In this document: piece by piece, positions 1,231 to 48,423 of the stretch | How positions within the stretch are numbered: the stretch's first letter is position 1 | Layout of the letters: each line of letters starts with the position of its first letter | Translations under genes and position numbers: made by a program | Notes under the pieces: generated by a model | The model's input: the letters and a program-made list of their open reading frames with translations, nothing else | Database searches by the model: none | What the model was told of the DNA's origin: nothing | Source of the DNA: Macrostomum lignano | Taxonomy: Eukaryota | Length of the DNA: 64,000 nucleotides | Direction of reading: 5' to 3' | NCBI GenBank assembly: GCA_002269645.1 | Contig: NIVC01000493.1 | Span: forward strand, 124,001 to 188,000

Positions 1231-1313
1231 GCTGCGCCTTTCTCACCTACAGCCAGCCGGAGAGCGCCCAGCAGTGCCAGAGCCTGTTGCACGGTAGCCG
1301 CATCCTCCCAGGG
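1231..1313 (+). CDS. CELF: CELF3-6/bruno-3-like protein, exon A (C-terminal half of RRM1); gene is 5'-partial in this window
   Basis: tttcag acceptor and gtgagt donor. Translates GCAFLTYSQPESAQQCQSLLHGSRILPG, matching the CELF RRM1 RNP1 region (KGCAFLTY...LHxxxxLPG). Not in the ORF track; read by hand. Confidence 0.9.
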
Positions 1314-5094: not shown

Positions 5095-5143
5095 ATGACC
5101 CGCCCGATGCAGGTGAAGCCGGCCGACTGCGATGGCAGATCAG
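5095..5143 (+). CDS. CELF: CELF exon B (end of RRM1 / inter-RRM linker)
   Basis: tttcag|ATG...TCAG|gtgag. MTRPMQVKPADCDGRS matches CELF MNRPIQVKPADSESR. Phase 0 in, phase 1 out, compatible with both neighbours. Confidence 0.9.
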
Positions 5144-10000: not shown

Positions 10001-13000
10001 CTGCAATGTGCAAGGGTCACAATCATCGGTAGGAGCACTCTCTGCAATGTGCAAGGGTCACAATCATCGGTAGGAGCACTCTCTGCAATGTGCAAGGGTC
10101 ACAATCATCGGTAGGAGCACTCTCTGCAATGTGCAAGGGTCACAATCATCGGTAGGAGCACTCTCTGCAATGTGCAAGGGTCACAATCATCGGTAGGAGC
10201 ACTCTCTGCAATGTGCAAGGGTCACAATCATCGGTAGGAGCACTCTCTGCAATGTGCAAGGGTCACAATCATCGGTAGGAGCACTCTCTGCAATGTGCAA
10301 GGGTCACAATCATCGGTAGGAGCACTCTCTGCAATGTGCAAGGGTCACAATCATCGGTAGGAGCACTCTCTGCAATGTGCAAGGGTCACAATCATCGGTA
10401 GGAGCACTCTCTGCAATGTGCAAGGGTCACAATCATCGGTAGGAGCACTCTCTGCAATGTGCAAGGGTCACAATCATCGGTAGGAGCACTCTCTGCAATG
10501 TGCAAGGGTCACAATCATCGGTAGGAGCACTCTCTGCAATGTGCAAGGGTCACAATCATCGGTAGGAGCACTCTCTGCAATGTGCAAGGGTCACAATCAT
10601 CGGTAGGAGCACTCTCTGCAATGTGCAAGGGTCACAATCATCGGTAGGAGCACTCTCTGCAATGTGCAAGGGTCACAATCATCGGTAGGAGCACTCTCTG
10701 CAATGTGCAAGGGTCACAATCATCGGTAGGAGCACTCTCTGCAATGTGCAAGGGTCACAATCATCGGTAGGAGCACTCTCTGCAATGTGCAAGGGTCACA
10801 ATCATCGGTAGGAGCACTCTCTGCAATGTGCAAGGGTCACAATCATCGGTAGGAGCACTCTCTGCAATGTGCAAGGGTCACAATCATCGGTAGGAGCACT
10901 CTCTGCAATGTGCAAGGGTCACAATCATCGGTAGGAGCACTCTCTGCAATGTGCAAGGGTCACAATCATCGGTAGGAGCACTCTCTGCAATGTGCAAGGG
11001 TCACAATCATCGGTAGGAGCACTCTCTGCAATGTGCAAGGGTCACAATCATCGGTAGGAGCACTCTCTGCAATGTGCAAGGGTCACAATCATCGGTAGGA
11101 GCACTCTCTGCAATGTGCAAGGGTCACAATCATCGGTAGGAGCACTCTCTGCAATGTGCAAGGGTCACAATCATCGGTAGGAGCACTCTCTGCAATGTGC
11201 AAGGGTCACAATCATCGGTAGGAGCACTCTCTGCAATGTGCAAGGGTCACAATCATCGGTAGGAGCACTCTCTGCAATGTGCAAGGGTCACAATCATCGG
11301 TAGGAGCACTCTCTGCAATGTGCAAGGGTCACAATCATCGGTAGGAGCACTCTCTGCAATGTGCAAGGGTCACAATCATCGGTAGGAGCACTCTCTGCAA
11401 TGTGCAAGGGTCACAATCATCGGTAGGAGCACTCTCTGCAATGTGCAAGGGTCACAATCATCGGTAGGAGCACTCTCTGCAATGTGCAAGGGTCACAATC
11501 ATCGGTAGGAGCACTCTCTGCAATGTGCAAGGGTCACAATCATCGGTAGGAGCACTCTCTGCAATGTGCAAGGGTCACAATCATCGGTAGGAGCACTCTC
11601 TGCAATGTGCAAGGGTCACAATCATCGGTAGGAGCACTCTCTGCAATGTGCAAGGGTCACAATCATCGGTAGGAGCACTCTCTGCAATGTGCAAGGGTCA
11701 CAATCATCGGTAGGAGCACTCTCTGCAATGTGCAAGGGTCACAATCATCGGTAGGAGCACTCTCTGCAATGTGCAAGGGTCACAATCATCGGTAGGAGCA
11801 CTCTCTGCAATGTGCAAGGGTCACAATCATCGGTAGGAGCACTCTCTGCAATGTGCAAGGGTCACAATCATCGGTAGGAGCACTCTCTGCAATGTGCAAG
11901 GGTCACAATCATCGGTAGGAGCACTCTCTGCAATGTGCAAGGGTCACAATCATCGGTAGGAGCACTCTCTGCAATGTGCAAGGGTCACAATCATCGGTAG
12001 GAGCACTCTCTGCAATGTGCAAGGGTCACAATCATCGGTAGGAGCACTCTCTGCAATGTGCAAGGGTCACAATCATCGGTAGGAGCACTCTCTGCAATGT
12101 GCAAGGGTCACAATCATCGGTAGGAGCACTCTCTGCAATGTGCAAGGGTCACAATCATCGGTAGGAGCACTCTCTGCAATGTGCAAGGGTCACAATCATC
12201 GGTAGGAGCACTCTCTGCAATGTGCAAGGGTCACAATCATCGGTAGGAGCACTCTCTGCAATGTGCAAGGGTCACAATCATCGGTAGGAGCACTCTCTGC
12301 AATGTGCAAGGGTCACAATCATCGGTAGGAGCACTCTCTGCAATGTGCAAGGGTCACAATCATCGGTAGGAGCACTCTCTGCAATGTGCAAGGGTCACAA
12401 TCATCGGTAGGAGCACTCTCTGCAATGTGCAAGGGTCACAATCATCGGTAGGAGCACTCTCTGCAATGTGCAAGGGTCACAATCATCGGTAGGAGCACTC
12501 TCTGCAATGTGCAAGGGTCACAATCATCGGTAGGAGCACTCTCTGCAATGTGCAAGGGTCACAATCATCGGTAGGAGCACTCTCTGCAATGTGCAAGGGT
12601 CACAATCATCGGTAGGAGCACTCTCTGCAATGTGCAAGGGTCACAATCATCGGTAGGAGCACTCTCTGCAATGTGCAAGGGTCACAATCATCGGTAGGAG
12701 CACTCTCTGCAATGTGCAAGGGTCACAATCATCGGTAGGAGCACTCTCTGCAATGTGCAAGGGTCACAATCATCGGTAGGAGCACTCTCTGCAATGTGCA
12801 AGGGTCACAATCATCGGTAGGAGCACTCTCTGCAATGTGCAAGGGTCACAATCATCGGTAGGAGCACTCTCTGCAATGTGCAAGGGTCACAATCATCGGT
12901 AGGAGCACTCTCTGCAATGTGCAAGGGTCACAATCATCGGTAGGAGCACTCTCTGCAATGTGCAAGGGTCACAATCATCGGTAGGAGCACTCTCTGCAAT

Positions 13001-16000
13001 GTGCAAGGGTCACAATCATCGGTAGGAGCACTCTCTGCAATGTGCAAGGGTCACAATCATCGGTAGGAGCACTCTCTGCAATGTGCAAGGGTCACAATCA
13101 TCGGTAGGAGCACTCTCTGCAATGTGCAAGGGTCACAATCATCGGTAGGAGCACTCTCTGCAATGTGCAAGGGTCACAATCATCGGTAGGAGCACTCTCT
13201 GCAATGTGCAAGGGTCACAATCATCGGTAGGAGCACTCTCTGCAATGTGCAAGGGTCACAATCATCGGTAGGAGCACTCTCTGCAATGTGCAAGGGTCAC
13301 AATCATCGGTAGGAGCACTCTCTGCAATGTGCAAGGGTCACAATCATCGGTAGGAGCACTCTCTGCAATGTGCAAGGGTCACAATCATCGGTAGGAGCAC
13401 TCTCTGCAATGTGCAAGGGTCACAATCATCGGTAGGAGCACTCTCTGCAATGTGCAAGGGTCACAATCATCGGTAGGAGCACTCTCTGCAATGTGCAAGG
13501 GTCACAATCATCGGTAGGAGCACTCTCTGCAATGTGCAAGGGTCACAATCATCGGTAGGAGCACTCTCTGCAATGTGCAAGGGTCACAATCATCGGTAGG
13601 AGCACTCTCTGCAATGTGCAAGGGTCACAATCATCGGTAGGAGCACTCTCTGCAATGTGCAAGGGTCACAATCATCGGTAGGAGCACTCTCTGCAATGTG
13701 CAAGGGTCACAATCATCGGTAGGAGCACTCTCTGCAATGTGCAAGGGTCACAATCATCGGTAGGAGCACTCTCTGCAATGTGCAAGGGTCACAATCATCG
13801 GTAGGAGCACTCTCTGCAATGTGCAAGGGTCACAATCATCGGTAGGAGCACTCTCTGCAATGTGCAAGGGTCACAATCATCGGTAGGAGCACTCTCTGCA
13901 ATGTGCAAGGGTCACAATCATCGGTAGGAGCACTCTCTGCAATGTGCAAGGGTCACAATCATCGGTAGGAGCACTCTCTGCAATGTGCAAGGGTCACAAT
14001 CATCGGTAGGAGCACTCTCTGCAATGTGCAAGGGTCACAATCATCGGTAGGAGCACTCTCTGCAATGTGCAAGGGTCACAATCATCGGTAGGAGCACTCT
14101 CTGCAATGTGCAAGGGTCACAATCATCGGTAGGAGCACTCTCTGCAATGTGCAAGGGTCACAATCATCGGTAGGAGCACTCTCTGCAATGTGCAAGGGTC
14201 ACAATCATCGGTAGGAGCACTCTCTGCAATGTGCAAGGGTCACAATCATCGGTAGGAGCACTCTCTGCAATGTGCAAGGGTCACAATCATCGGTAGGAGC
14301 ACTCTCTGCAATGTGCAAGGGTCACAATCATCGGTAGGAGCACTCTCTGCAATGTGCAAGGGTCACAATCATCGGTAGGAGCACTCTCTGCAATGTGCAA
14401 GGGTCACAATCATCGGTAGGAGCACTCTCTGCAATGTGCAAGGGTCACAATCATCGGTAGGAGCACTCTCTGCAATGTGCAAGGGTCACAATCATCGGTA
14501 GGAGCACTCTCTGCAATGTGCAAGGGTCACAATCATCGGTAGGAGCACTCTCTGCAATGTGCAAGGGTCACAATCATCGGTAGGAGCACTCTCTGCAATG
14601 TGCAAGGGTCACAATCATCGGTAGGAGCACTCTCTGCAATGTGCAAGGGTCACAATCATCGGTAGGAGCACTCTCTGCAATGTGCAAGGGTCACAATCAT
14701 CGGTAGGAGCACTCTCTGCAATGTGCAAGGGTCACAATCATCGGTAGGAGCACTCTCTGCAATGTGCAAGGGTCACAATCATCGGTAGGAGCACTCTCTG
14801 CAATGTGCAAGGGTCACAATCATCGGTAGGAGCACTCTCTGCAATGTGCAAGGGTCACAATCATCGGTAGGAGCACTCTCTGCAATGTGCAAGGGTCACA
14901 ATCATCGGTAGGAGCACTCTCTGCAATGTGCAAGGGTCACAATCATCGGTAGGAGCACTCTCTGCAATGTGCAAGGGTCACAATCATCGGTAGGAGCACT
15001 CTCTGCAATGTGCAAGGGTCACAATCATCGGTAGGAGCACTCTCTGCAATGTGCAAGGGTCACAATCATCGGTAGGAGCACTCTCTGCAATGTGCAAGGG
15101 TCACAATCATCGGTAGGAGCACTCTCTGCAATGTGCAAGGGTCACAATCATCGGTAGGAGCACTCTCTGCAATGTGCAAGGGTCACAATCATCGGTAGGA
15201 GCACTCTCTGCAATGTGCAAGGGTCACAATCATCGGTAGGAGCACTCTCTGCAATGTGCAAGGGTCACAATCATCGGTAGGAGCACTCTCTGCAATGTGC
15301 AAGGGTCACAATCATCGGTAGGAGCACTCTCTGCAATGTGCAAGGGTCACAATCATCGGTAGGAGCACTCTCTGCAATGTGCAAGGGTCACAATCATCGG
15401 TAGGAGCACTCTCTGCAATGTGCAAGGGTCACAATCATCGGTAGGAGCACTCTCTGCAATGTGCAAGGGTCACAATCATCGGTAGGAGCACTCTCTGCAA
15501 TGTGCAAGGGTCACAATCATCGGTAGGAGCACTCTCTGCAATGTGCAAGGGTCACAATCATCGGTAGGAGCACTCTCTGCAATGTGCAAGGGTCACAATC
15601 ATCGGTAGGAGCACTCTCTGCAATGTGCAAGGGTCACAATCATCGGTAGGAGCACTCTCTGCAATGTGCAAGGGTCACAATCATCGGTAGGAGCACTCTC
15701 TGCAATGTGCAAGGGTCACAATCATCGGTAGGAGCACTCTCTGCAATGTGCAAGGGTCACAATCATCGGTAGGAGCACTCTCTGCAATGTGCAAGGGTCA
15801 CAATCATCGGTAGGAGCACTCTCTGCAATGTGCAAGGGTCACAATCATCGGTAGGAGCACTCTCTGCAATGTGCAAGGGTCACAATCATCGGTAGGAGCA
15901 CTCTCTGCAATGTGCAAGGGTCACAATCATCGGTAGGAGCACTCTCTGCAATGTGCAAGGGTCACAATCATCGGTAGGAGCACTCTCTGCAATGTGCAAG

Positions 16001-18390
16001 GGTCACAATCATCGGTAGGAGCACTCTCTGCAATGTGCAAGGGTCACAATCATCGGTAGGAGCACTCTCTGCAATGTGCAAGGGTCACAATCATCGGTAG
16101 GAGCACTCTCTGCAATGTGCAAGGGTCACAATCATCGGTAGGAGCACTCTCTGCAATGTGCAAGGGTCACAATCATCGGTAGGAGCACTCTCTGCAATGT
16201 GCAAGGGTCACAATCATCGGTAGGAGCACTCTCTGCAATGTGCAAGGGTCACAATCATCGGTAGGAGCACTCTCTGCAATGTGCAAGGGTCACAATCATC
16301 GGTAGGAGCACTCTCTGCAATGTGCAAGGGTCACAATCATCGGTAGGAGCACTCTCTGCAATGTGCAAGGGTCACAATCATCGGTAGGAGCACTCTCTGC
16401 AATGTGCAAGGGTCACAATCATCGGTAGGAGCACTCTCTGCAATGTGCAAGGGTCACAATCATCGGTAGGAGCACTCTCTGCAATGTGCAAGGGTCACAA
16501 TCATCGGTAGGAGCACTCTCTGCAATGTGCAAGGGTCACAATCATCGGTAGGAGCACTCTCTGCAATGTGCAAGGGTCACAATCATCGGTAGGAGCACTC
16601 TCTGCAATGTGCAAGGGTCACAATCATCGGTAGGAGCACTCTCTGCAATGTGCAAGGGTCACAATCATCGGTAGGAGCACTCTCTGCAATGTGCAAGGGT
16701 CACAATCATCGGTAGGAGCACTCTCTGCAATGTGCAAGGGTCACAATCATCGGTAGGAGCACTCTCTGCAATGTGCAAGGGTCACAATCATCGGTAGGAG
16801 CACTCTCTGCAATGTGCAAGGGTCACAATCATCGGTAGGAGCACTCTCTGCAATGTGCAAGGGTCACAATCATCGGTAGGAGCACTCTCTGCAATGTGCA
16901 AGGGTCACAATCATCGGTAGGAGCACTCTCTGCAATGTGCAAGGGTCACAATCATCGGTAGGAGCACTCTCTGCAATGTGCAAGGGTCACAATCATCGGT
17001 AGGAGCACTCTCTGCAATGTGCAAGGGTCACAATCATCGGTAGGAGCACTCTCTGCAATGTGCAAGGGTCACAATCATCGGTAGGAGCACTCTCTGCAAT
17101 GTGCAAGGGTCACAATCATCGGTAGGAGCACTCTCTGCAATGTGCAAGGGTCACAATCATCGGTAGGAGCACTCTCTGCAATGTGCAAGGGTCACAATCA
17201 TCGGTAGGAGCACTCTCTGCAATGTGCAAGGGTCACAATCATCGGTAGGAGCACTCTCTGCAATGTGCAAGGGTCACAATCATCGGTAGGAGCACTCTCT
17301 GCAATGTGCAAGGGTCACAATCATCGGTAGGAGCACTCTCTGCAATGTGCAAGGGTCACAATCATCGGTAGGAGCACTCTCTGCAATGTGCAAGGGTCAC
17401 AATCATCGGTAGGAGCACTCTCTGCAATGTGCAAGGGTCACAATCATCGGTAGGAGCACTCTCTGCAATGTGCAAGGGTCACAATCATCGGTAGGAGCAC
17501 TCTCTGCAATGTGCAAGGGTCACAATCATCGGTAGGAGCACTCTCTGCAATGTGCAAGGGTCACAATCATCGGTAGGAGCACTCTCTGCAATGTGCAAGG
17601 GTCACAATCATCGGTAGGAGCACTCTCTGCAATGTGCAAGGGTCACAATCATCGGTAGGAGCACTCTCTGCAATGTGCAAGGGTCACAATCATCGGTAGG
17701 AGCACTCTCTGCAATGTGCAAGGGTCACAATCATCGGTAGGAGCACTCTCTGCAATGTGCAAGGGTCACAATCATCGGTAGGAGCACTCTCTGCAATGTG
17801 CAAGGGTCACAATCATCGGTAGGAGCACTCTCTGCAATGTGCAAGGGTCACAATCATCGGTAGGAGCACTCTCTGCAATGTGCAAGGGTCACAATCATCG
17901 GTAGGAGCACTCTCTGCAATGTGCAAGGGTCACAATCATCGGTAGGAGCACTCTCTGCAATGTGCAAGGGTCACAATCATCGGTAGGAGCACTCTCTGCA
18001 ATGTGCAAGGGTCACAATCATCGGTAGGAGCACTCTCTGCAATGTGCAAGGGTCACAATCATCGGTAGGAGCACTCTCTGCAATGTGCAAGGGTCACAAT
18101 CATCGGTAGGAGCACTCTCTGCAATGTGCAAGGGTCACAATCATCGGTAGGAGCACTCTCTGCAATGTGCAAGGGTCACAATCATCGGTAGGAGCACTCT
18201 CTGCAATGTGCAAGGGTCACAATCATCGGTAGGAGCACTCTCTGCAATGTGCAAGGGTCACAATCATCGGTAGAGCACTCTCTGCAATTGCAAGTCACAA
18301 TCATGAGTGAGCAGCTCTCTGAATTGCAAGTCACAATCGGCCACTCTCTGAGTGCAAGCACTCTCGGTAGTCAGCACTCTCTCAGTGCAA
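7015..18390. repeat. 41-bp satellite, about 275 near-identical copies (about 11.4 kb), intronic in CELF
   Basis: aatcatcggtaggagcactctctgcaatgtgcaagggtcac; period 41. Variants seen only at the two ends. Confidence 0.99.
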
Positions 18391-23137: not shown

Positions 23138-24574
23138 AACAACCCGCGGTCCCAGAATTCAACAGGCCCTCCTTAACCAAAGCTTAATAAAAAGTCAACA
23201 AATAATATATTCGCAAAATTCGAGAAATTTGAACTCTGTCTTTATTGCATACAGCTTTCTCAATCTGCAAAGCCCACATAGGCAAGTCTAAGAGGAACAT
23301 TTGGTCTCGCCTCTTCCTGTTTTCCCAGAGTGAGGGAGCGATAGAGCCTTAAGCAGCCCAGCCAATAGGAACCCCTTGGCCCTGGCAGACCCGCTCAGGC
23401 CTTTCTCATTACTGCCTGACCGTGCCCCCCCACTCTTCGAGCCTTTGTGTCCTTCTTCATCGGATCCCATGTACATTCACACACACGGGACTTCGTATAC
23501 ACCACCAGCCCCACTTCTCCCCTCTCCCCTTTTCCCCAATGAATATTTAGCCCCAACAAATTAGTGTTAAAAGGGGCCCCCAAGCCCAGGGCACTGGAAA
23601 GAACACACAAGAGGAGCTCCACATTCAGAACATTCAGACACTAAAGAAGAACCAAAACTAGACAATCCTTTGACACACCTCAGCCGTTCAGTGTTGTTTT
23701 TCATTCGTATTCTAATAACCTCTGGACAGCCATGATTATCGACCATCACCACGAAGAGCCGCCTGCAGATGCCAAATCTGGCAGTGACAAACTTCGGCAG
23801 ATTCACCTAAATAGTATTAGCAACCATGATGGTACGGATAAGGTTAAACAGATCCAGCGCCACTTGGCAACTCTACCTGGACACGAAGGTAAATCCTATC
23901 AATCATCTCACTGGTGCTCGTGAACTTCTTGGTGTCCTTAAGCAAAAATTCGTTATAGTGTTGCAGTTTCTACTAATTAGGTGGCGAGATATTTACGCAT
24001 ACTAAAATAGTGATAGTTACTCCCGCCGTTTACCCACAGCATCTTAGTTTAGTAGGATAACACTAACACAAACCTGCGCCTGTGGCATTATATTTTAGTA
24101 GTAAGGATCCCGATTAACAGAATTAGATAACTTTTCTTAGGTAAAATAATTTATTTTCGGTCAATCAATGATAAAGCAGCCCCCACCCGCCCAGACCCGG
24201 TCCGGAAATTTTCTCAATTCAACTCTAAAATATCCCAATTCGTAACGTTCTCCATGAAGCTTTCATTGCGTCTTTGTTATCGATTTAGATTTAATTAATC
24301 TCTTCACCGAATCGTCTTAGAATTTGATGGCCACTTTGGCCTTCTATTGCTCGAGTATTCGAAATCAAGAGACGCGTACAGATCGGTACAAAGGCAAAGT
24401 CTGCGATGATTTTAGGCGTGGCTCCCTCTCAGACTGGAAATGAGTCTCTTTGGGTGGGTTAAGGGATATATTGAATAATTTTTATCCTTTCGGTAAGAGG
24501 CGGACATCAAATATTTGTTGTATTGCGTACGTAATGCGATAAATTATATTTTGCTATTTTAGCCTCCACTCCCC

Positions 24575-25500
24575 GTCACACTACCCTCTCTCCCCGACAC
24601 ACTACCCTCTCTCGCCGCCACACTACCCTCTCTCGCCGCCACACTACCCTCTCTCACCGCCACACTACCCTCTCTCCCCGCCACACTACCCTCTCTCCCT
24701 GACACCCTACCTTCTCTCCCCGACACACTCCCCTCTCTCGCCGCCACACTACCCTCTCTCGCCGCCACACTACCCTCTCTCCCCGTCACACTACCCTCTC
24801 TCCCCGCCACACTACCCTCTCTCCCCGACACACTACCCTCTCTCCCTGACACCCTACCTTCTCTCCCCGACACACTACCCTCTCTCCCCGACACACTACC
24901 CTCTCTCCCTGACACCCTACCCTCTCTCCCCGCCACACTACCCTCTCTCCCCGACACACTACCCTCTCTCCCTGACACACTACCCTCTCTCCCTGACACC
25001 CTACCCTCTCTCCCTGACACCCTACCTTCTCTCCCCGACACACTACCCTCTCTCCCCACCACACTACCCTCCCTCCCCGACACACTACCGTCTCTCCCCG
25101 CCACACTACCTTCTCTCCCCGACACACTACCCTCCCTCCCCAACACACTACCCTCCCTCCCCGACACACTACCCTCCCTCCCCGACACACTACCCTCCCT
25201 CCCCGACACACTACCCTCTCTCGCCGCCACACTACCCTCTCTCCCCGCCACACTACCCTCTCTCCCTGACACCCTACCTTCTCTCCCCGACACACTACCC
25301 TCTCTCCCCACCACACTACCCTCCCTCCCCGACACACTACCGTCTCTCCCCGCCACACTACCTTCTCTCCCTGACACACTACCCTCTCTCCCCACCACAC
25401 TACCCTCCCTCCCCGACACACTACCCTCCCTCCCCGACACACTACCCTCCCTCCCCAACACACTACCCTCCCTCCCCGACACACTACCCTCCCTCCCCTC
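24575..25500. repeat. 21-bp C-rich minisatellite
   Basis: acactaccctctctccccgac; source of the REGSVSG ORF. Confidence 0.95.
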
Positions 25501-25594: not shown

Positions 25595-25803
25595 ACGACC
25601 GCAAGCTGTTCGTCGGCATGCTCTCCAAGCAGCAGTCCGAGGACGATGTCAGACGACTGTTTGAACCCTTCGGCCGTATCGAGGAATGCGCCATCCTTCG
25701 CGACCAGCACGGCGTCAGCAAGGGCTGCGCGTTTATCAAGTACACCAATCACCTGGAGGCGCAGAGTGCCATCAACAATTTGCACGGCAGTCAGACTATG
25801 GCT
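25595..25803 (+). CDS. CELF: CELF exon C (RRM2)
   Basis: gcag acceptor, gtgagt donor. [50 protein letters not shown]...LHGSQTMA is a typical CELF3-6 RRM2. Confidence 0.95.
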
Positions 25804-25864
25804 GTGAGTGACCTGTCCGGTTGTGACTCGCATCTCAGAGTGGGGCATCGTTTGATCTACTAAT

Positions 25865-27190
25865 CTTTTGAGCTGCTGACGGGTATCTTTTGATCAGCTA
25901 ATGGGTATCTTTTGATCAGCTAATGGGTATCTTTTGATCTGCTAATGGGTATCTTTTGATCAGCTAATGGGTATCTTTTGATCTGCTAATGAGTATCTTT
26001 TGATCAGCTAATGGGTATCTTATGATCTGCTGACGGGTATCTTTTGATCAGCTAATGGGTATCTTTTGATCTGCTGACGGGTATCTTTTGATCAGCTAAT
26101 GGGTATCTTTTGATCAGCTAATGGGTATCTTTTGATCTGCTAATGGGTATCTTTTGAGCTGCTGACGGGTATCTTTTGAGCTGCTGACGGGTATCTTTTG
26201 AGCTGCTGACGGGTATCTTTTGAGCTGCTGACGGGTATCTTTTGAGCTGCTGACGGGTATCTTTTGAGCTGCTGACGGGTATCTTTTGAGCTGCTGACGG
26301 GTGTCTTTTGATCAGCTAATGAGTAAATTTTGATCTGCTGACGGGGTATCTTTTGATCTGCTGACGGGTATCTTTTGATCTGCTGACGGGTATCTTTTGA
26401 TCAGCTAATGGGTATCTTTTGATCTGCTGACGGGTATCTTTTGATCAGCTAATGGGTATCTTTTGATCTGCTGACGGGTATCTTTTGATCAGCTAATGGG
26501 TATCTTTTTATCTGCTAATGGGTATCTTTTGATCTGCTGACAGGTATCTTTTTATCTGCTAATGGGTATCTTTTTATCTGCTAATGGGTATCTTTTTATC
26601 TGCTAATGGGTATCTTTTGATCTGCTGACAGGTATCTTTTGATCAGCTAATGGGTATCTTTTGATCTGCTAATGGATATCTTTTGATCTGCCGACAGGTA
26701 TCTTTTGATCAGCTAATGGGTATCTTTTGATCTGCTGACGGGTATCTTTTGATCAGCTAATGGGTATCTTTTGAGCTGCTGACGGGTAATCTTCTGAGCT
26801 GCTGACGGGTATCTTTTGAGCTGCTGACGGGGTAATCTTTTGATCTGCTGACGGGTATCTTTTGATCAGCTAATGAGTATATTTTGATCTGCTGACGGGT
26901 ATCTTTTGATCTGCTGACGGGTATCTTTTGATCTACTAATGGGTATCTTTTGATCTGCTAATGGGAATCTTTCGATCTACTAATGGGTATCTTTTGATCT
27001 ACTAATGGGTATCTTTTGATCTACTAATGGGTATCTTTTGATCTACTAATGGGTATCTTTTGATCTGTTGACGGGGTATCTTTTGATAAACTGAATGGGC
27101 ATCTTTTGATATACTGAATGGGCATCTTTTAATCTGCTAATGGGTATCTTTTGATCTGCTAATGGTTTAATAGGTATCGTTTGATCTGCT
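25865..27190. repeat. 22-bp minisatellite
   Basis: gggtatcttttgatc(a/t)gct(aat/gac). Confidence 0.95.
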
Positions 27191-27370: not shown

Positions 27371-27529
27371 GGCGCCAGCAGCTCCATCGTGGTGAAATTC
27401 GCCGACAACGAGAAGGAGCGGCAGCTGCGCAAGCTGCAGCAGATGGTCGGGCCGCTGGGTCTCGTTAATCCCGGATTAACCACGGCTGGTCAGGCTAATC
27501 CTGTGCCCACGGCTGCTCAGTTTGGACAG
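27371..27529 (+). CDS. CELF: CELF exon D (end of RRM2 and start of divergent linker)
   Basis: ctcag acceptor, gtaggc donor, 53 codons. [25 protein letters not shown] matches CELF GASSSLVVKFADTEKER. Confidence 0.93.
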
Positions 27530-27536
27530 GTAGGCC

Positions 27537-29867
27537 ACTGACTGACTGACTGACTGACTGACTGACTGACTGACTGACTGACTGACTCACTGACTGACTG
27601 ACTGACTCACTGACTCACTGACTCACTGACTGACTGACTGACTGACTGACTGACTGACTGACTGACTCACTGACTGACTGACTGACTGACTAACTGACTG
27701 ACTGACTGACTGACTGACTGACTGACTGACTCACTGACTGACTCACTGACTGACTCACTGACTGACTGACTGACTGACTGACTCACTGACTGACTGACTG
27801 ACTGACTGACTGACTGACTGACTCACTGACTGACTCACTGACTGACTGACTGACTGACTGACTGACTGACTGACTCACTGACTGACTCACTGACTGACTC
27901 ACTGACTGACTGACTGACTCACTGACTGACTCACTGACTGACTCACTGACTGACTGACTGACTGACTGACTGACTGACTGACTGACTGACTGACTGACTC
28001 ACTGACTGACTCACTGACTGACTCACTGACTGACTGACTGACTGACTGACTGACTGACTGACTGACTGACTCACTGACTGACTGACTCACTGACTGACTG
28101 ACTCACTGACTGACTCACTGACTGACTGACTGACTGACTGACTGACTCACTGACTGACTGACTCACTGACTGACTGACTGACTGACTGACTGACTGACTG
28201 ACTGACTCACTGACTGACTCACTGACTGACTCACTGACTGACTGACTGACTGACTGACTGACTGACTGACTGACTGACTGACTGACTGACTGACTGACTG
28301 ACTGACTGACTGACTGACTGACTGACTGAATGTCTTACTGACTGACTGACTGACTGACTCACTGACTGACTGACTGACTGACTCACTGACTGACTGACTG
28401 TCTCACTGACTGACTGACTGACTGACTGACTGACTGACTGACTGACTGACTGACTGACTGACTGACTGACTGACTGACTGACTCACTGACTCACTGACTC
28501 ACTGACTCACTGACTGACTGACTGACTGACTGACTGACTGACTCACTGACTGACTGACTGACTCACTGACTGACTGACTGACTGACTGACTGACTGACTG
28601 ACTCACTGACTGACTCACTGACTGACTCACTGACTGACTGACTGACTGACTGACTCACTGACTGACTGACTGACTGACTGACTGACTGACTGAATGTCTT
28701 ACTGACTGACTGACTGACTGACTCACTGACTGACTGACTGACTGACTCACTGACTGACTGACTGTCTCACTGACTGACTGACTGACTGACTGACTGACTG
28801 ACTGACTGACTGACTGACTGACTGACTGACTCACTGACTGACTGACTGACTGACTCACTGACTGACTGACTGACTGACTGACTGACTGACTGACTCACTG
28901 ACTGACTGACTGACTGACTGACTGACTGACTGAATGTCTTACTGACTGACTCACTGACTGACTGACTGACTCACTGACTGACTGACTGACTGACTGACTG
29001 ACTGACTGACTGACTGACTGACTGACTGACTGACTGACTGACTGACTGACTGACTGACTGACTGACTGACTGTCTCACTGACTGACTGACTGAATGTCTT
29101 ACTGACTGACTGACTGACTGACTGAATGTCTTACTGACTGACTGACTGACTGACTCACTGACTGACTGACTGACTGACTGACTGACTGACTGACTGACTG
29201 ACTGACTGACTGACTGACTGACTGTCTCACTGACTGACTGACTGACTGACTGACTGACTGACTGACTGAATGTCTCACTGACTGACTGACTGACTGACTG
29301 ACTGACTGACTGAATGTCTCACTGACTGACTGACTGACTGACTGACTGACTGAATGTCTTACTGACTGACTGACTGACTGACTCACTGACTGACTGACTG
29401 ACTGACTGACTGACTGACTGACTGACTGTCTCACTGACTGACTGACTGACTGACTGACTGACTGACTGACTGACTGACTGACTGACTGACTGACTGAGTG
29501 ACTGTCTCACTGACTGACTGACTGACTGACTGACTGACTGACTGACTGACTGACTGACTGACTGAATGTCTTACTGACTGACTGAATGACTGACTGACTC
29601 ACTGACTGACTGACTGTCTCACTGACTGACTGACTGATTCACTGACTCACTGACTGACTGACTGACTGACTCACTGACTGACTGACTGACTCACTGACTC
29701 ACTGACTGACTGACTGACTGACTGACTGACTGACTGACTGACTGACTGACTGACTGACTCACTGACTGACTGACTGACTGACTGACTCACTGACTGACTG
29801 ACTGACTGACTGTCTTACTGACTGACTGACTGACTGACTGACTGACTGACTCACTGACTGACTGACT

Positions 29868-29918
<51 letters not shown>

Positions 29919-30256
29919 TGACTCACTGACTGACTCACTGACTCACTGACTCACTGACTGTCTCACTGACTGACTGACTGACTCACTGACTGACTCACTG
30001 ACTCACTGACTCACTGACTCACTGACTGTCTCACTGACTGACTCACTGACTCACTGACTCACTCACTCACTGACTGACTGACTGACTGACTGACTGACTG
30101 ACTGACTGACTGACTCACTGACTGTCTCACTGACTGACTCACTGACTCACTGACTCACTCACTCACTGACTGACTGACTGACTGACTGACTGACTGACTG
30201 ACTGACTGACTGACTGACTGACTGACTGACTGACTGACTGTCTCACTGACTGACTG
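27537..30256. repeat. (ACTG)n microsatellite, about 2.7 kb, with ACTC and aatgtctt variants
   Basis: Direct reading; starts at intron position +8. Confidence 0.98.
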
Positions 30257-30760
30257 GCTTCACTAAAGAGCATTCAGAGAACAGCAATCTCTGAGCGAGC
30301 GCAGGTATCAGCCAGCAGCGAATCTGACAGTGCAGCCGTCAAGAATGGCTAACGGCGCTACCCGAAAGCAACAGAGAATTTTGCCAACGCTGGGCAAATG
30401 GTGGTCAATAAATTTAAGAGCATAATTTTATATTGCCTGCTCCTAGAAGGAAACAGGAAGCCCTATTTCTAGCCACTGTAGCGGCTGGGATGAGGAGAGT
30501 CAGCAGGAAGTTCGGTAAAAAGGTTGGTGTGAGGTGAGCACGGAGTGCGCAGCACTACGCTTCCCCTCACGGCTCGAATCCCGCAGCTCCCCTCAGCTGT
30601 TAGATAAGGAGAGGCAGGGGGCGCGTGTATCTGGTCTCGGCTCACCTCGAGACACGCTTTGCGAGGTAAAAAAAGGGAGGCAATCGGATCAGGAGAGTAA
30701 ATCAGAGTTCAGCAGGCCAGCGCAGAAGGGAGAGAGAGAGAACAGACTGCCAGCCAGTAT

Positions 30761-30767
30761 TATAAAA
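30761..30767 (+). promoter_or_regulatory. Candidate internal TATA box within CELF intron
   Basis: TATAAAA starting 47 nt before the ATG at 30808, preceded by a GAGA run at about 30729-30741. Confidence 0.4.
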
Positions 30768-30807
30768 CACTGAGCCGAGATAGAAGACAGACTCTGAGAG
30801 GACCGGG

Positions 30808-30984
30808 ATGTCGGAGCTAACACAAGAAATGTCTACAGAGCAGCAGCAGCAGCAGCCGCAGCAGCAGGCTGAGCAGCAGGCGGTGCCCATGAGACAAAAT
30901 CATCCAGCGGGAGCTGCGGCGCTGGCAATACCAGAAGGAAAATTTGGCTACGTTTATTCCTGCGGATCCGTAACATATGGGACT
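30808..30984 (+). CDS. Candidate alternative first coding exon of CELF (or, unspliced, a 67-aa nested ORF 30808-31011)
   Basis: TATAAAA at 30761, ATG with a purine at -3, 59 Gln/Ala-rich codons, then a phase-0 GTGAGT donor at 30985 that is compatible with the phase-0 acceptor at 31361. No transcript evidence. Confidence 0.45.
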
Positions 30985-31023
30985 GTGAGTCCAGGCACAG
31001 CCAAAAAGTAGCACCAATTAGTC

Positions 31024-31330
31024 GCCGATATGTATCGAAATTAATTTAGGGCCGATATTTTTAAACATCGATTTGGCGCCGATATGTATCGAAATCAATT
31101 TAGGGCCGATATGTATCGAATTCGATTTGGCGCCGATATGTATCGAATTCGATTTGGCGCCGATATGTATCGAAATTGATTTTTATGGCCAATATGTATC
31201 GAAATTGATTTTTATGGCCGATATGTATCGAAATTGATTTTTATGGCCGATATATATCGAAATCGATCAAAATTGTTTGTTTTTGCAAAACTTATCGAAA
31301 AGATATCAGCGCCGATATGCATCGATAAAA
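31024..31330. repeat. Approximately 27-bp degenerate repeat
   Basis: gccgatatgtatcgaaatt units; a single copy also occurs at about 48224. Confidence 0.85.
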
Positions 31331-31360
31331 AACGTAATCTTTCTCAACCACAATTCACAG

Positions 31361-31619
31361 GCCGGCGCCGGCGGTCCCAGCGGTGGCTACATCAATCCAG
31401 TTGCCGCTCTGGCGCTCCAGCTACAAAGCGGCGGCGGCGGCGGCGGCCTGCAGCAGCACCAGCAGAGTCAGCAGCTGCTCAGCTCGGCTGTCTCCTCATC
31501 GAGTATGCTCAGTCCGACCACCGTGGCCAACGGTGGCGGAGCGGCCGGCGACGCGGCGTCCACAGCGGCTGCTCTGTATGCGGCCGGCGTCATGCCGGGG
31601 CACCTTCTTGGCACGGCCG
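31361..31619 (+). CDS. CELF: CELF exon E (low-complexity linker)
   Basis: ttcacag acceptor, gtaagc donor. GGYINPVAAL resembles the CELF linker GGYLNPMAA. Phase 0 to 1. Confidence 0.85.
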
Positions 31620-31746: not shown

Positions 31747-31809
31747 GCTCAGAGCATCTGCAGCAGGCTTACACGGCAGCCATGTCCCCCAGCATGTACC
31801 CGAGCCTGC
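31747..31809 (+). CDS. CELF: CELF exon F (linker)
   Basis: ttttttcag acceptor, gtgagt donor. GSEHLQQAYTAAMSPSMYPSL contains the LQQAY motif of CELF linkers. Phase 1 to 1. Confidence 0.82.
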
Positions 31810-31837
31810 GTGAGTAACTGCCCAGACCGCTACTCAG

Positions 31838-33686
31838 CCACACTGCTGAAGCGATTCCCAGCCTCACTCCTGAAGCGATTCCCAGCCTCACTCCTAAATC
31901 GATTCCCAGACACACTCCTGAAGCGATTCCCAGCCTCACTCCTGAAGCGATTCCCAGCCTCACTCCTGAAGCGATTCCCAGACACACTCCTGAAGCGATT
32001 CCCAGACACACTCCTGAAGCGATTCCCAGACACACTCCTGAAGCGATTCCCAGCCTCACTCCTGAAGCGATTCCCAGCCTCACTCCTGAAGCGATTCCCA
32101 GCCTCACTCCTGAAGCGATTCCCAGCCTCACTCCTGAAGCGATTCCCAGCCTCACTCCTGAAGCGATTCCCAGCCTCACTCCTGAAGCGATTCCCAGACA
32201 CACTCCTGAAGCGATTCCCAGACACACTCCTGAAGCGATTCCCAGACACACTCCTGAAGCGATTCCCAGCCTCACTCCTGAAGCGATTCCCAGCCTCACT
32301 CCTGAAGCGATTCCCAGCCTCACTCCTGAAGCGATTCCCAGCCTCACTCCTGAAGCGATTCCCAGCCTCACTCCTGAAGCGATTCCCAGCCTCACTCCTG
32401 AAGCGATTCCCAGCCTCACTCCTGAAGCGATTCCCAGCCTCACTCCTAAAGCGATTCCCAGCCTCACTCCTGAAGCAATTCCCAGCCTCACTCCTGAAGC
32501 GATTCCCAGCCTCACTCCTGAAGCGATTCCCAGCCTCACTCCTGAAGCGATTCCCAGCCTCACTCCTGAAGCGATTCCCAGCCTCACTCCTGAAGCGATT
32601 CCCAGCCTCACTCCTAAAGCGATTCCCAGCCTCACTCCTAAATCGATTCCCAGCCTCACTCCTGAAGCAATTCCCAGCCTTACTTCTGGCCTCACTCCTA
32701 AAGCGATTCCCAACCTCACTCCTGAAGCAATTCCCAGACTCACTTCTGGCCTCACTCCTGAAGCGATTCCCAGACTCACTTCTGGCCTCACTCCTGAAGC
32801 GATTCCCAGCCTCACTCCTAAATCGATTCCCAGCCTCACTCCTAAATCGATTCCCAGCCTCACTCCTGAAGCAATTCCCAGCCTCACTTCTGGCCTCACT
32901 CCTGAAGCGATTCCCAGCCTCACTCCTGAAGCGATTCACAGCCTCACTTCTGGCCTCACTCCTGAAGCAATTCCCAGACTCACTTCTGGCCTCACTCCTA
33001 AAGCGATTCCCAGCCTCACTCCTGAAGCAATTCCCAGACTCACTTCTGGCCTCACTCCTAAAGCGATTCCCAGCCTCACTCCTGAAGCAATTCCCAGCCT
33101 CACTTCTGGCCTCACTCCTGAAGCGATTCCCAGCCTCACTCCTGAAGCGATTCCCAGCCTCACTCCTGAAGCGATTCCCAGCCTCACTTCTGGCCTCACT
33201 CCTGAAGCAATTCCCAGACTCACTTCTGGCCTCACTCCTAAAGCGATTCCCAGCCTCACTCCTGAAGCAATTCCCAGACTCACTTCTGGCCTCACTCCTA
33301 AAGCGATTCCCAGCCTCACTCCTGAAGCAATTCCCAGCCTCACTTCTGGCCTCACTCCTGAAGCGATTCCCAGCCTCACTCCTGAAGCAATTCCCAGCCT
33401 CACTTCTGGCCTCACTCCTGAAGCGATTCCCAGCCTCACTCCTGAAGCGATTCCTAGCCTCACTCCTGAAGCGATTCCCAGACACACTCCTGAAGCGATT
33501 CCCAGACACACTCCTGAAGCGATTCCCAGACACACTCCTGAAGCGATTCCCAGCCTCACTCCTGAAGCGATTCCCAGACACACTCCTGAAGCGATTCCCA
33601 GACACACTCCTGAAGCGATTTCCAGACACACTCCTGAAGCGATTTCCAGACACACTCCTGAAGCGATTTCCAGACACACTCCTGAA
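31838..33686. repeat. 24-bp minisatellite (with 12-bp sub-unit) filling the last CELF intron
   Basis: gcctcactcctgaagcgattccca; source of the 764/615/384/304-aa ORFs. Confidence 0.97.
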
Positions 33687-33713: not shown

Positions 33714-34090
33714 CCGGGTTCAACGCAGCGTTCGCGCACCCGTTCATGTCGCTGGCCCAGCAGGCCATCACGATGCCGGTGCAGCACAAGGAGGGCTCGA
33801 AGGATTTCATCCTGACCGGGCCCGACGGCTGCAACCTGTTCATCTACCACCTGCCGCAGGAGTTCGGCGACACGGAACTGGCCCAGATGTTCGCCCCGTT
33901 CGGCACGGTGATCTCGGCCAAGGTGTACGTAGACCGGGCCACCAACCAGAGCAAGTGCTTCGGCTTCGTCAGCTTCGACAACTCGGCCTCGGCTGCCGCG
34001 GCCATCCAGGCGATGAACGGCTTCCAGATTGGCACCAAGCGGCTCAAGGTGCAGCTCAAGCGGCCCAAGGGCGAGGCCCGGCCCTACTGA
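33714..34090 (+). CDS. CELF: CELF terminal exon (RRM3 and stop)
   Basis: tttgcag acceptor. [18 protein letters not shown]...[16 protein letters not shown]...[19 protein letters not shown]...RPY* is the highly conserved CELF RRM3. Confidence 0.97.
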
Positions 34091-40527: not shown

Positions 40528-41337
40528 ATGACGGCCAACTCGACGGAGCCGCTGCCACAACAGCCGCCGCCGCCGCAGCAGTCAAGCGTGCGTGGATTCA
40601 GCAGCGGCGAGGCCTTCCTACAGGCGATGATCGCCGACTTGGCCGACTGGCTCTCCTGCCTGCACGACTGCGACCTCCCCGGCGACGACCAGGAGGGCTT
40701 CCTGGCCGGCCTGGACTCCGGCGCGCTGCTGTGCCGCCACGCCGCCATGGTGCAGGCAGCCGCCGCTGACCAGCTCAGCTCCAGCGCTGCCGCCGCGTCA
40801 ACCCTGCTGCGACCGCTGCGCGCCGGGGCGCCGCCTCTCCGCCTGCCGCACGCGGCGCCACCGGTTCGGCCGCGCGCTCCGCCCGGCAGCTTCATGGCTC
40901 GCGACAGCATCGCCTGCTTTATCGCCTGGTGCCGCGCGCTCGGCCTGCACAACTGCGTCCTGTTCGAGACCGAGGACCTGGTTGGCAGGAAGAACCCACG
41001 CAGTGTGGTGCTGTGCCTGCTGGAGCTGGCCAGGGCCGGGGCTCGGTTCGGCCTGGAGGTGCCCGAGCTGGTGCACTTCGAGCAAGAGATCGAGGCCGAG
41101 CTGATGAAGAGCAGCCCGACCTGCTCAGACTCCGGCTTGGCCTCCCCCGCCAGCAACTCCCTGCAGTCGGTGCCGGAGCAGTCCGAGGAGCCGCGGTCGC
41201 CGGCGTCTGTCGAGGACGGTCCGACTGAGCAGCCGCCAGCCGCTGAGGCAACTCCGTCGGAGGCGGCGCCGGTCACGGAGCTTCAAAGACGACGTAACAG
41301 AAGATGGCAGTGCGACCTGAAATCGCTGGACGAGCTG
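40528..41337 (+). CDS. GAS2L: GAS2-like protein exon 1 (calponin-homology domain)
   Basis: ADLADWL...LDSGALLC...FMARDSIACFIAWCRALG...LFETEDLVGRKNPRSVVLCLLELAR is a GAS2-family CH domain. CTG|gtgaga donor after LKSLDEL. Confidence 0.92.
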
Positions 41338-41863
41338 GTGAGACCGGCTTCGGGGATTCTGCCTGGGTTGGGGAGGCTCATGGATGATTGATGACTGTTT
41401 CTGAGCATAGACAAGCGCTTCTTAGTAGGCTAGATTAGCAATCCATTCCATTCCTGTATCTGTGGTGTCGGCTAGATTAGCAATCCATTAATTTTTTTCC
41501 CAGGATAACTATTCAAAGTCCGATGATCCCATTGATCAAATCGTCAATATTCTGCAGTCGAGTTTATACCAAATATTTTTAAATTGCCCCGCACTTCCGG
41601 ACTGAAGTCAGACTGACGCTTAGAATTCAGCATGCAGTCAGCAGATGATCCTTACATATACTGATACTAATGCCGAATTTCCCTGGTTGAACTTTCTAAA
41701 ATTTGACCCTGGAAGCAGCAGTTTTAAACTTTGGTTGGATTACAGTTAGACTAGGCAGGCTGTATCGGTTGTAACTGACGTACCCCCAAGGTGAAACCTA
41801 TACAGCGTCCTTGTTAAAGCAGCGTAGCCAATGTTCCTGTAGAATCGCCATCCTCCTCCGCAG

Positions 41864-41971
41864 GTTCGCGAGCTGGTCAGCGAGTGCGGCTGCGAGGAAA
41901 AGTTCCCCATGAAACGGCTGGACGAGGGCAAGTACCTGTTCGGCGACTCGCAGATGCTCATCTTTGTTCGG
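41864..41971 (+). CDS. GAS2L: GAS2-like exon 2 (GAR/Gas2 domain, first half)
   Basis: ccgcag acceptor, gtaaat donor, 36 codons: VRELVSECGCEEKFPMKRLDEGKYLFGDSQMLIFVR. Confidence 0.92.
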
Positions 41972-42245
41972 GTAAATGCTCTCTGCTTCTTTTCCAAAGA
42001 GCGGAAACGTTAGTTTTAGGGCCGGTTTCGTTTGTCAAACTCAAAAACCCTTCGATACTTTGACTTACTGGGCTACTTGGATGCACTACAATTATTGAAA
42101 GGACCTCACCTGGGGACGCACACGTTCGAACTTCTATCTAAAGATCAGTGCACTATAAGAGATTCGCTCTACATTCTTTCCTTACTACTCTTCAGTAGGT
42201 ACGATCTCCTCTAACTGCAACTCCCAACCTAATTCACGCGCTCAG

Positions 42246-42965
42246 GTGTTGCGCAATCACGTGATGGTCCGTGTAGGCGGCGGCTGGGACTCGCTGGAGC
42301 ACCTGCTGCTCAAGCACGACCCCTGCCGGAGGGAGGCGGCCGCTGCGACCTCCGCGACTTCCTCTGACGCCGCCGCGGGCTGCCTTCGCTCCGGGGTGCC
42401 AGTCGGCCACCGGGAGGAGCGCGAGCGCCGCAGGCGGCTCCTCACCCAATCACCGGCAGCGACCGCCGGCGTCAAGGACGACAATGACTCGAGAGACTCT
42501 GCTGCGACCGCCGCTGCTATCGACCGTCCAGACGGCGACCGTCAGCGGCAGCAGCAGCGGAGGAAGATGAGCGCGCCAACTTTGTCAATGACGGAGGTGG
42601 CGAGCGCGGCCGCGGCTGCGGCTGCGGCGGTAGCGAAGGCGGAGGGGCAGAAAAAGTCGGCGCGAGGCGGCGTCGAGCGGCAGGACCTCGCCGACCTTCG
42701 AGACCTTCGGCCGCTCAGCCGGACTCAGCAGCCGACTCCTTCGCCGACGCCTCCGTCGAAGAGGAAGACCCAGACCACGCAGTCGCCTTTGCCCAGCCGC
42801 GGTGGGCGACGCGCGTCGCTGCAGTCGACGTCGTTGTCGGCGGCCAGCTTCGGTGGCGCGTCGCGCATTCCTGTGCCGGTGAACCCGACGGCGCCGCGCC
42901 CGCCTCCACTGCTGCTGGCGTCAAAACGGCAGGAGCTGCAGGCCAGCGCGGGCTCCCTGGAGTGA
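42246..42965 (+). CDS. GAS2L: GAS2-like exon 3 (GAR second half and disordered tail with SxIP motif); full protein about 545 aa
   Basis: ctcag acceptor. [28 protein letters not shown] is the GAR signature. SRIP at 42861-42872; TGA ends at 42965. Confidence 0.92.
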
Positions 42966-47339: not shown

Positions 47340-47627
47340 GTGAGTGCCGAATCCGCTCTGTGAATCTCACTTTGCTAGAGTGAATCTCTTTGAGTCAAGT
47401 ATGTGATATGGCAAGCAGGTACTGCTACCTAATCTATAATTGTGGCTCAATGAAATCTCATTATTTGACACCACATGGCAAGGAAACCAAACACTCCCCA
47501 GTCCTGACAGTTATCGCTGTCCAGAGGGTGCAATCAGGAATATGCCGATATGTTGTGTCAATAATTTCTTATTAGTGATCCCACAATGAATATGTGACTG
47601 GGACTGTGAAACCGTGCGTAATTTCAG

Positions 47628-47773
47628 GGCAGCATCCGTGCGGTTCGAACGCTCCCGGGCCGTCCAGCAGCTGCGTGGACCGCCGACTCGGCCGGGTGAA
47701 GTGGTTCAACGTCATCAAGGGCTTCGGTTTCATCACGCCGGACGATGGCGGACCGGAAGTCTTTGTGCACCAG
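47628..47773 (+). CDS. lin-28: Lin-28 exon (cold-shock domain, N-half)
   Basis: atttcag acceptor, gtaagg donor. [28 protein letters not shown] contains CSD RNP1 and RNP2. Confidence 0.93.
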
Positions 47774-47878
47774 GTAAGGTGGTGTCGTCAGATGTACCAA
47801 TTTTATTCTGCGGCTATTGTAGGAGAGTGAACCAAAGCAAATGGGCAAGGCTCTGGAGTTTGCCAGCCAAACTTTCTT

Positions 47879-48190: not shown

Positions 48191-48423
48191 GTGAGCTTTA
48201 TAGAGAGCGAATTACACATTTTGCCGATATGTATCGAAATAAACTTTCGTAAGGAGACTTCTTATATTAAAATAATTCAAAGGGACTAAATTTAGTAAGC
48301 AGTGGGGCTTCGGGCACTGCCCGCAAATAGAAGCAACAGTCCACTGCAATTTGACGATTGACGATTTGTGACGCTTTTGTCAACAAAGTGTAATGCAATA
48401 TTTACAAACATCATGTCTCCCAG

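Follow-up and report, generated by a model that had tools for sequence, protein, structure and literature searches.

Alternative promoters that shorten RNA-binding proteins are well known. The closest described system to the locus studied here lies in the same gene: the CELF/Bruno-like gene of Macrostomum lignano has an internal first exon at about 23607-23888, within the roughly 20-kb intron that separates the RRM1 exons from the RRM2 exon. This exon starts the transcript-based models of all three genomic copies of the gene and gives an isoform without RRM1, so that an internal start is documented for this gene and is a precedent for a further one. The candidate exon beginning at 30808 resembles it in several respects. 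Both lie in a large repeat-filled intron; the annotated exon has no acceptor at its 5' end, and the candidate has none within 30784-30880. Like the annotated exon, the candidate would encode an orphan N-terminal peptide of low GC3 and would be spliced in phase to a common exon to give an N-terminally truncated CELF protein. Exon 23607-23888 differs in its transcript-based annotation in three copies, in keeping both RRM2 and RRM3, and in having no canonical TATAAAA, whereas the candidate would retain RRM3 only.

Other systems bear on the architecture or on the function of such a product. CELFdelta and NLSCELFdelta are engineered truncated CELF proteins which are reported to be inactive alone and to block wild-type CELF-mediated splicing (PMC3082560). 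They offer a functional analogy for a dominant-negative isoform, and they differ in being artificial and vertebrate. A TNRC4-like protein of Dugesia japonica (P0008, 460 aa) has a novel N-terminus followed by RRM2 and RRM3, as does the annotated M. lignano isoform. A 'CELF2' of Cichlidogyrus casuarinus (P0010, 169 aa) consists of Met, linker and RRM3 only, which is the architecture proposed here; its contig is 7.9 kb long, and the model may be incomplete. Both proteins lack the peptide MSELTQ with which the candidate product would begin. No natural RRM3-only isoform is given in the Drosophila Bru1 paper.

The DNA analysed (the window) is a stretch of 64 kb of contig NIVC01000493.1, assembly Mlig_3_7 (GCA_002269645.1). 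Window position n corresponds to contig position n + 124000, and the locus of the NCBI protein PAA82132.1 matches the window at 100% identity. Its host gene lies on the plus strand and was assigned to the CELF family by its two N-terminal RRMs, divergent linker, C-terminal RRM3 and high similarity to CELF proteins, in agreement with a Pfam RRM_1 match at E = 2.6e-19. Homologues of the candidate spliced product number in the thousands and are CELF proteins, the top ones being M. lignano CELF models with 90-91% identity. By tblastn, partial RRM1 was placed at 1218-1349, RRM2 at 25600-25800 and RRM3 at 33716-34087, and these placements, combined with direct reading of the sequence, gave the following exon map.

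1231-1313, plus strand: exon of the second half of RRM1, with donor GTGAGT
5095-5143, plus strand: small exon MTRPMQVKPADCDGRS between RRM1 and RRM2, in the full-length form
About 23607-23888, plus strand: internal first exon with which the NCBI transcript-based models begin; its CDS ATG is at 23732 and its donor is G|GTAAAT
25595-25803, plus strand: RRM2 exon
27371-27529, plus strand: constitutive exon after RRM2, ending in AAQFGQ and in phase 0, joined directly to 31361 in transcript-based models
31361-31619, plus strand: linker (divergent-domain) exon with the common acceptor
31747-31809, plus strand: 63-nt linker exon SEHLQQAYTAAMSPSMYPSLP, phase 1 at both ends
33714-34090, plus strand: last coding exon, with RRM3 and the stop codon

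The 5' end of the internal first exon was taken from position 7297 of L002, one of the two other genomic copies (L002 and L003), where the equivalent exon spans 7297-7578.

The candidate lies in the intron 27530-31360, in an island of unique sequence flanked by an (ACTG)n array at 27537-30256 and by a 27-bp repeat array at 31024-31267. Its features are as follows.

30257-31023, plus strand: unique-sequence island of 767 bp, holding all candidate signals
30564-30603, plus strand: pyrimidine-rich tract with acceptor-like CAG|30587, CAG|30597 and TAG|30604, identical in L002 and L003
30761-30767, plus strand: TATAAAA, 47 nt 5' of the ATG (48 nt in L002 and L003), kept in both of these copies
30781-30783, plus strand: TAG in frame with the ATG, 27 nt upstream of it, kept in L002 and L003
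30788-30793, plus strand: Inr-like CAGACT, with its A at 30789, 28 nt past the first T of the TATA
30808-30984, plus strand: candidate exon, 59 codons from the ATG, MSELTQEMSTEQQQQQPQQQAEQQAVPMRQNHPAGAAALAIPEGKFGYVYSCGSVTYGT
30841-30879, plus strand: imperfect CAG (Gln) run QQQQQPQQQAEQQ, 39 nt, open in all three plus-strand frames
30985-30990, plus strand: donor GTGAGT, phase 0, fitting the acceptor at 31361

A sequence-only reading of the window had proposed that this segment is a TATA-driven first exon, and its coordinates proved exact throughout: the TATAAAA at 30761, the TAG at 30781, the ATG at 30808 in the context gggATGt, and the 59 codons (MSELTQ...SVTYGT) to 30984. The ACT|GTGAGT donor at 30985 and its phase-0 junction to the acceptor cacag|GCC, with the exon starting at 31361, were likewise found in the sequence, and the same donor hexamer is indeed shared with three accepted exons, ending at 1313, 25803 and 31809. 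We could also reproduce the proposed protein, which carries the linker and RRM3 and lacks RRM1 and RRM2. Joining 30808-30984, 31361-31619, 31747-31809 and 33714-34090 gives an uninterrupted product of 291 aa, and Pfam, run on the version without the 63-nt exon, finds in it a single RRM_1 domain, which is RRM3. The peptide QNHPAGAAALAIPEGK would mark the product of the candidate exon in proteomics.

According to this proposal, a TATA/Inr promoter near 30789 would lead to the AUG at 30808 and to a 59-codon first exon spliced from 30984 to 31361. The resulting RRM3-only isoform, 291 aa here and 288 aa in the other copies, would combine a new Gln-rich N-terminus with part of the linker and RRM3; it would be minor or tissue-restricted, and could compete with full-length CELF. 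We consider this a substantial possibility that falls short of an even chance. In its favor, all signals are there, correctly spaced and kept in three genomic copies. At motif level the arrangement is that of a core promoter, TATAAAA followed 28 nt downstream by the A of an Inr-like CAGAC; CAGACT is a low-information motif, and its use as a start is a prediction from the letters. From 30789 the predicted 5'UTR would be about 19 nt long and would hold no AUG before the one at 30808; this very shortness of the 5'UTR counts against the proposal. TATA-type promoters do exist in M. lignano, because the validated ELAV4 promoter has a TATA-like box 28 nt 5' of the engineered ATG, as read from the primer of its 3' end. 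The GC content and CpG of the island were not discriminating as a promoter mark.

We then asked how often such an arrangement would be expected by chance. TATAAAA occurs four times on the plus strand of the 64-kb window. Both strands (128 kb) were scanned for GTRAGT donors at which an ORF opened by an ATG and 40 or more codons long ends, in any phase. This gave six site-and-phase combinations, two of which are the real RRM2 exon and one the candidate, and the candidate alone among the six has a TATA-like box within 150 nt. Allowing for the free choice of location, we estimate that about 0.0005-0.005 such configurations are expected by chance in the gene. The arrangement is thus unusual, albeit that 39 nt of the ORF are a CAG run open in every frame. 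Because TATAAAA, a first ATG, a 59-codon ORF and a phase-matched GTGAGT are rare together, this result speaks for the first-exon proposal and weakens the reading of the segment as a pseudo-exon, as does the fact that the gene already has one internal first exon.

The transcript-based gene models point the other way. The annotation of Mlig_3_7 drew on RNA-seq, a de novo transcriptome, trans-splice and poly(A) data, and TransDecoder (PMC5730564), and RAMPAGE libraries have been made for M. lignano (PMC5173321, PMC5730564). In the model of the window copy (P0003; PAA82132.1, BOX15_Mlig013790g1) and in that of the L002 and L003 copies (P0121; NCBI proteins PAA48459.1 and PAA67962.1), 27529 is joined straight to 31361 (AAQFGQ|AGAGGPSGG), so that the segment is skipped in all three genomic copies. 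None of the transcript-based models of the three copies has the candidate as its 5'-most exon, no protein in the searched public collections begins with MSELTQ, and no other gene is annotated on the island in Mlig_3_7. NCBI displays a single model for each gene copy, and an isoform that is rare or confined to certain tissues could therefore go unlisted. Literature searches for Mlig013790, Mlig031217 and M. lignano CELF isoforms gave no papers.

What is shown is that the sequence carries the signals and that the transcript-based models leave the segment out. Because these models skip it in three copies, they support the reading to which we give about an even chance, namely that the segment is an unused pseudo-exon or proto-exon, a lineage-specific exon-like stretch of intron. 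It would be removed with the rest of the intron 27530-31360 in the mRNAs documented so far, and its ORF would be kept open partly by the CAG repeat. The TATA, the ATG and the consensus donor would lure human readers and ab initio gene finders alike, and would contribute nothing to the main CELF products. That the segment is wholly unused is what we infer. In weighing this reading against the others we took into account the rarity of the motifs, the low prior for a coding internal first exon, the absence from the models, and the composition and substitutions described below.

The candidate peptide is already public as predicted coding sequence, in two UniProt models from an older M. lignano assembly, A0A1I8IDG2 (P0001) and A0A1I8HTD9 (P0002). 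Both carry it as an internal exon and share the candidate's donor junction, SVTYGT|AGAGGPSGG. They differ from the first-exon proposal in joining the segment to RRM2-side exons, and their 5' boundaries disagree with each other and are implausible on the Mlig_3_7 sequence. A0A1I8HTD9 enters the segment at a purine-rich 'cag|CAG' in the Gln run (pyrimidine fraction 0.35). The junction residues VSTGM of A0A1I8IDG2 can be reproduced solely by joining 27463|GT to AG|30801 with the frame shifted; read in the CELF frame on the window sequence, this join leads to a stop. The residues AVSTG, which link QQMV to MSELTQ in this model, can be read from Mlig_3_7 27446-27463/30801 only with such a frame shift, and the mismatch suggests an indel error or an allele in the older assembly. 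Because both models take an internal Met in the RRM2 exon as their start, they look like ab initio calls made from the same signals rather than expression evidence, in line with the pseudo-exon reading; presumably they derive from a MAKER/SNAP-type pipeline. An exact-sequence look-up returned no record for either of them or for the 67-aa unspliced ORF.

To judge whether the segment behaves as coding sequence, we compared its codon composition with that of the other exons. GC3 was 0.53 for the candidate, falling to 0.40-0.45 when the CAG run is left out, whereas five constitutive exons had 0.72-0.95 (mean 0.83). This composition is non-coding-like and unlike that of the gene's other exons; it stands against a coding first exon and supports the pseudo-exon reading, since GC3 lies below that of the constitutive exons. 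The annotated internal first exon 23607-23888 has a likewise low GC3 (0.46), which favors the first-exon proposal. Homology gave a similar picture. Among 1.84 billion protein representatives, A0A1I8HTD9, from the same gene, was the sole homologue of the candidate peptide, and the peptide occurred in none of 120 CELF homologues, a set that contains P0004 and P0009, paralogues from M. lignano. A search with the peptide alone and a shortened Gln run gave no matches and missed even A0A1I8IDG2, so that it carries no weight in either direction. The peptide is thus an orphan, which counts against the first-exon proposal; because it occurs only in the two UniProt models, and no protein starts with MSELTQ, the pseudo-exon reading gains further support.

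Comparison of the three genomic copies yielded evidence in both directions. Over the aligned island L002 and L003 do not differ from each other, and they diverge from the window by about 2%. Both retain the TATA, the TAG, the ATG, the ORF and the donor, with a predicted product of 288 aa. Identity of the island to L002 and L003 is 95.7-96.4%, no better than for other unique intron. Against L002, the candidate exon shows 3 substitutions in 168 aligned nt (1.8%), unique intron about 2.0% and many indels, and the constitutive exons 1.0%. Divergence of the candidate thus matches the intron background, which supports the pseudo-exon reading and tells against a first exon, at what is a shallow divergence. 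The kinds of change, few in number, lean slightly toward coding sequence. The events in the candidate comprise two synonymous substitutions and, in the repeat, a Pro/Gln change and an in-frame indel of 9 nt; the constitutive exons (1068 nt) have 10 synonymous changes, one non-synonymous change and no indels. Outside the CAG run the candidate has no indels, and both of its substitutions are synonymous third-position changes, a pattern resembling that of the constitutive exons, which weakens the pseudo-exon reading and agrees with a coding first exon. With so few events, the likelihood ratio of about 1.4-7 leans slightly toward coding constraint on the candidate.

The copies also bear on what the segment would encode if left unspliced. 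A nested ORF of 67 aa had been proposed for this case. It is present in the window, and in L002 and L003 the stop is absent and the frame runs to 75 aa. A conserved micropeptide is therefore disfavored, and the failure of L002 and L003 to share this stop is a further point for the pseudo-exon reading.

The acceptor sequences bear on what kind of exon the segment could be if its donor were used. At five known acceptors of the gene, CAG is preceded by sequence with a pyrimidine fraction of 0.60-0.75, whereas every AG in 30784-30880 lies in a purine-rich context (0.30-0.40). For these AGs the sequence-only reading was correct that no pyrimidine-rich CAG acceptor is present, and its argument against a cassette exon holds for a short in-frame cassette: given such contexts, a first exon is the simplest and more plausible interpretation if the donor is used. 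The in-frame TAG at 30781 closes the frame of any exon beginning farther upstream. Spliced-leader trans-splicing onto the exon was set aside, there being no acceptor with a pyrimidine tract from the TAG to the ATG. Farther upstream the claim fails. YAG sites resembling acceptors occur 200-360 nt upstream, in and near the tract 30564-30603, with exon starts at 30447, 30482, 30587, 30597 and 30604 and pyrimidine fractions of 0.65-0.70. Together with the donor at 30985 they would define a cassette of 381-538 nt that reaches stops within 3-58 codons of the CELF frame, a possibility which had been overlooked.

Poison exons are common in RNA-binding-protein genes. The predicted sites would supply a usable acceptor, a donor and a premature stop in the host frame, so that inclusion of an exon from 30587, 30597 or 30604 (or from 30447 or 30482) to the donor at 30985 would lead to down-regulation of CELF or to truncation after RRM2. 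In YAG and pyrimidine fraction the sites are like the real acceptors of the gene, each leads to a stop as described, they are identical in three copies, and the donor is consensus. On the other hand, this reading requires the TATA, the ATG and the phase-matched 59-codon ORF to be coincidental, and the island is conserved no better than other intron, at a divergence too small for a strong test, where poison exons are typically highly conserved. We consider a poison cassette very unlikely.

Equally improbable in our view is a short in-frame cassette as in A0A1I8HTD9, even though alternative exons are frequent in CELF linker regions. Here 27529 would be joined to 'cag|CAG' at 30844 and the exon would end at 30984, inserting about 47 residues between RRM2 and RRM3. 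A published model uses this junction, and the 141 nt preserve the frame on the window sequence and read through to the stop. It is the CAG run itself that furnishes the in-frame 'cag|CAG' pseudo-acceptors, and the length fits a cassette but the acceptor context, at a pyrimidine fraction of 0.30-0.40, is purine-rich where the five real acceptors have a pyrimidine tract. The model looks ab initio and the transcript-based models skip the exon; GC3 is low, and other CELF proteins have no homologous insert. Even with both kinds counted, a cassette or poison exon is an unlikely account of the segment.

With respect to function, we consider it somewhat less likely than not that the island is a working internal promoter. 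Together with the annotated start near 23.6 kb, it would let the gene produce a nested series of RRM1-2-3, RRM2-3 and RRM3-only proteins, the last of which, with a lineage-specific Gln-rich head, would compete with full-length CELF or act as its dominant negative in particular cells. If the isoform exists, a dominant-negative function is reasonable, because truncated CELF acts in this way in vertebrates (PMC3082560); the same observation lends the first-exon proposal some plausibility. The locus would then offer a natural RRM3-only CELF in a flatworm model with transgenesis, a counterpart of the engineered dominant negative used in mice. It would be a way to ask what RRM3 and the linker do alone, and a handle on the tuning of CELF activity in stem-cell or neural lineages. 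The mechanism itself is familiar, so that this further example would add incrementally to what is known. If, as the pseudo-exon reading has it, the segment is unused, the repeat-rich introns of M. lignano hold islands that mislead ab initio predictors. The segment would then stand in UniProt as coding sequence with two incompatible boundaries, a case of automated annotation being misled.

The surroundings of the island are dominated by repeats. The island itself is single copy in the window, and its origin as a dispersed repeat or transposon was ruled out, as it is single copy in the window and at the other loci and has no Pfam or protein homologue. A search for non-coding RNA in the island gave a sub-threshold mir-50 match alone, which lies inside the 27-bp repeat and was rejected. 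The CELF introns consist mostly of tandem arrays, such as those at 7015-18338, with 276 copies of a 41-bp unit, and at 31835-33686, with a 24-bp unit. The 41-bp array spans 11.3 kb with 99% matches, a uniformity that suggests either a very recent expansion or an artefact of assembly collapse or expansion. Nearly each CELF intron has its own micro- or minisatellite, including (ACTG)n over 2.7 kb, the 24-bp unit over 1.85 kb, and 21- and 22-bp units; the satellite-filled stretches are 27537-30256, 31835-33686, 24569-25498 and 25863-27165. Array lengths explain why the gene measures 10.4, 7.0 and 7.3 kb in its three genomic copies.

Downstream on the plus strand, a neighboring gene at 40528-42965 encodes a 545-aa protein with CH and GAS2 domains and lies 3' of the CELF gene in three genomic copies, and an open frame with a cold-shock-domain-like motif was seen at 47579-47827. 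The 27-bp repeat at 31024-31267 (unit GCCGATATGTATCGAAAT...) has one more exact 18-nt copy at 48223-48240, 17 kb away, and may be a member of a dispersed repeat family.
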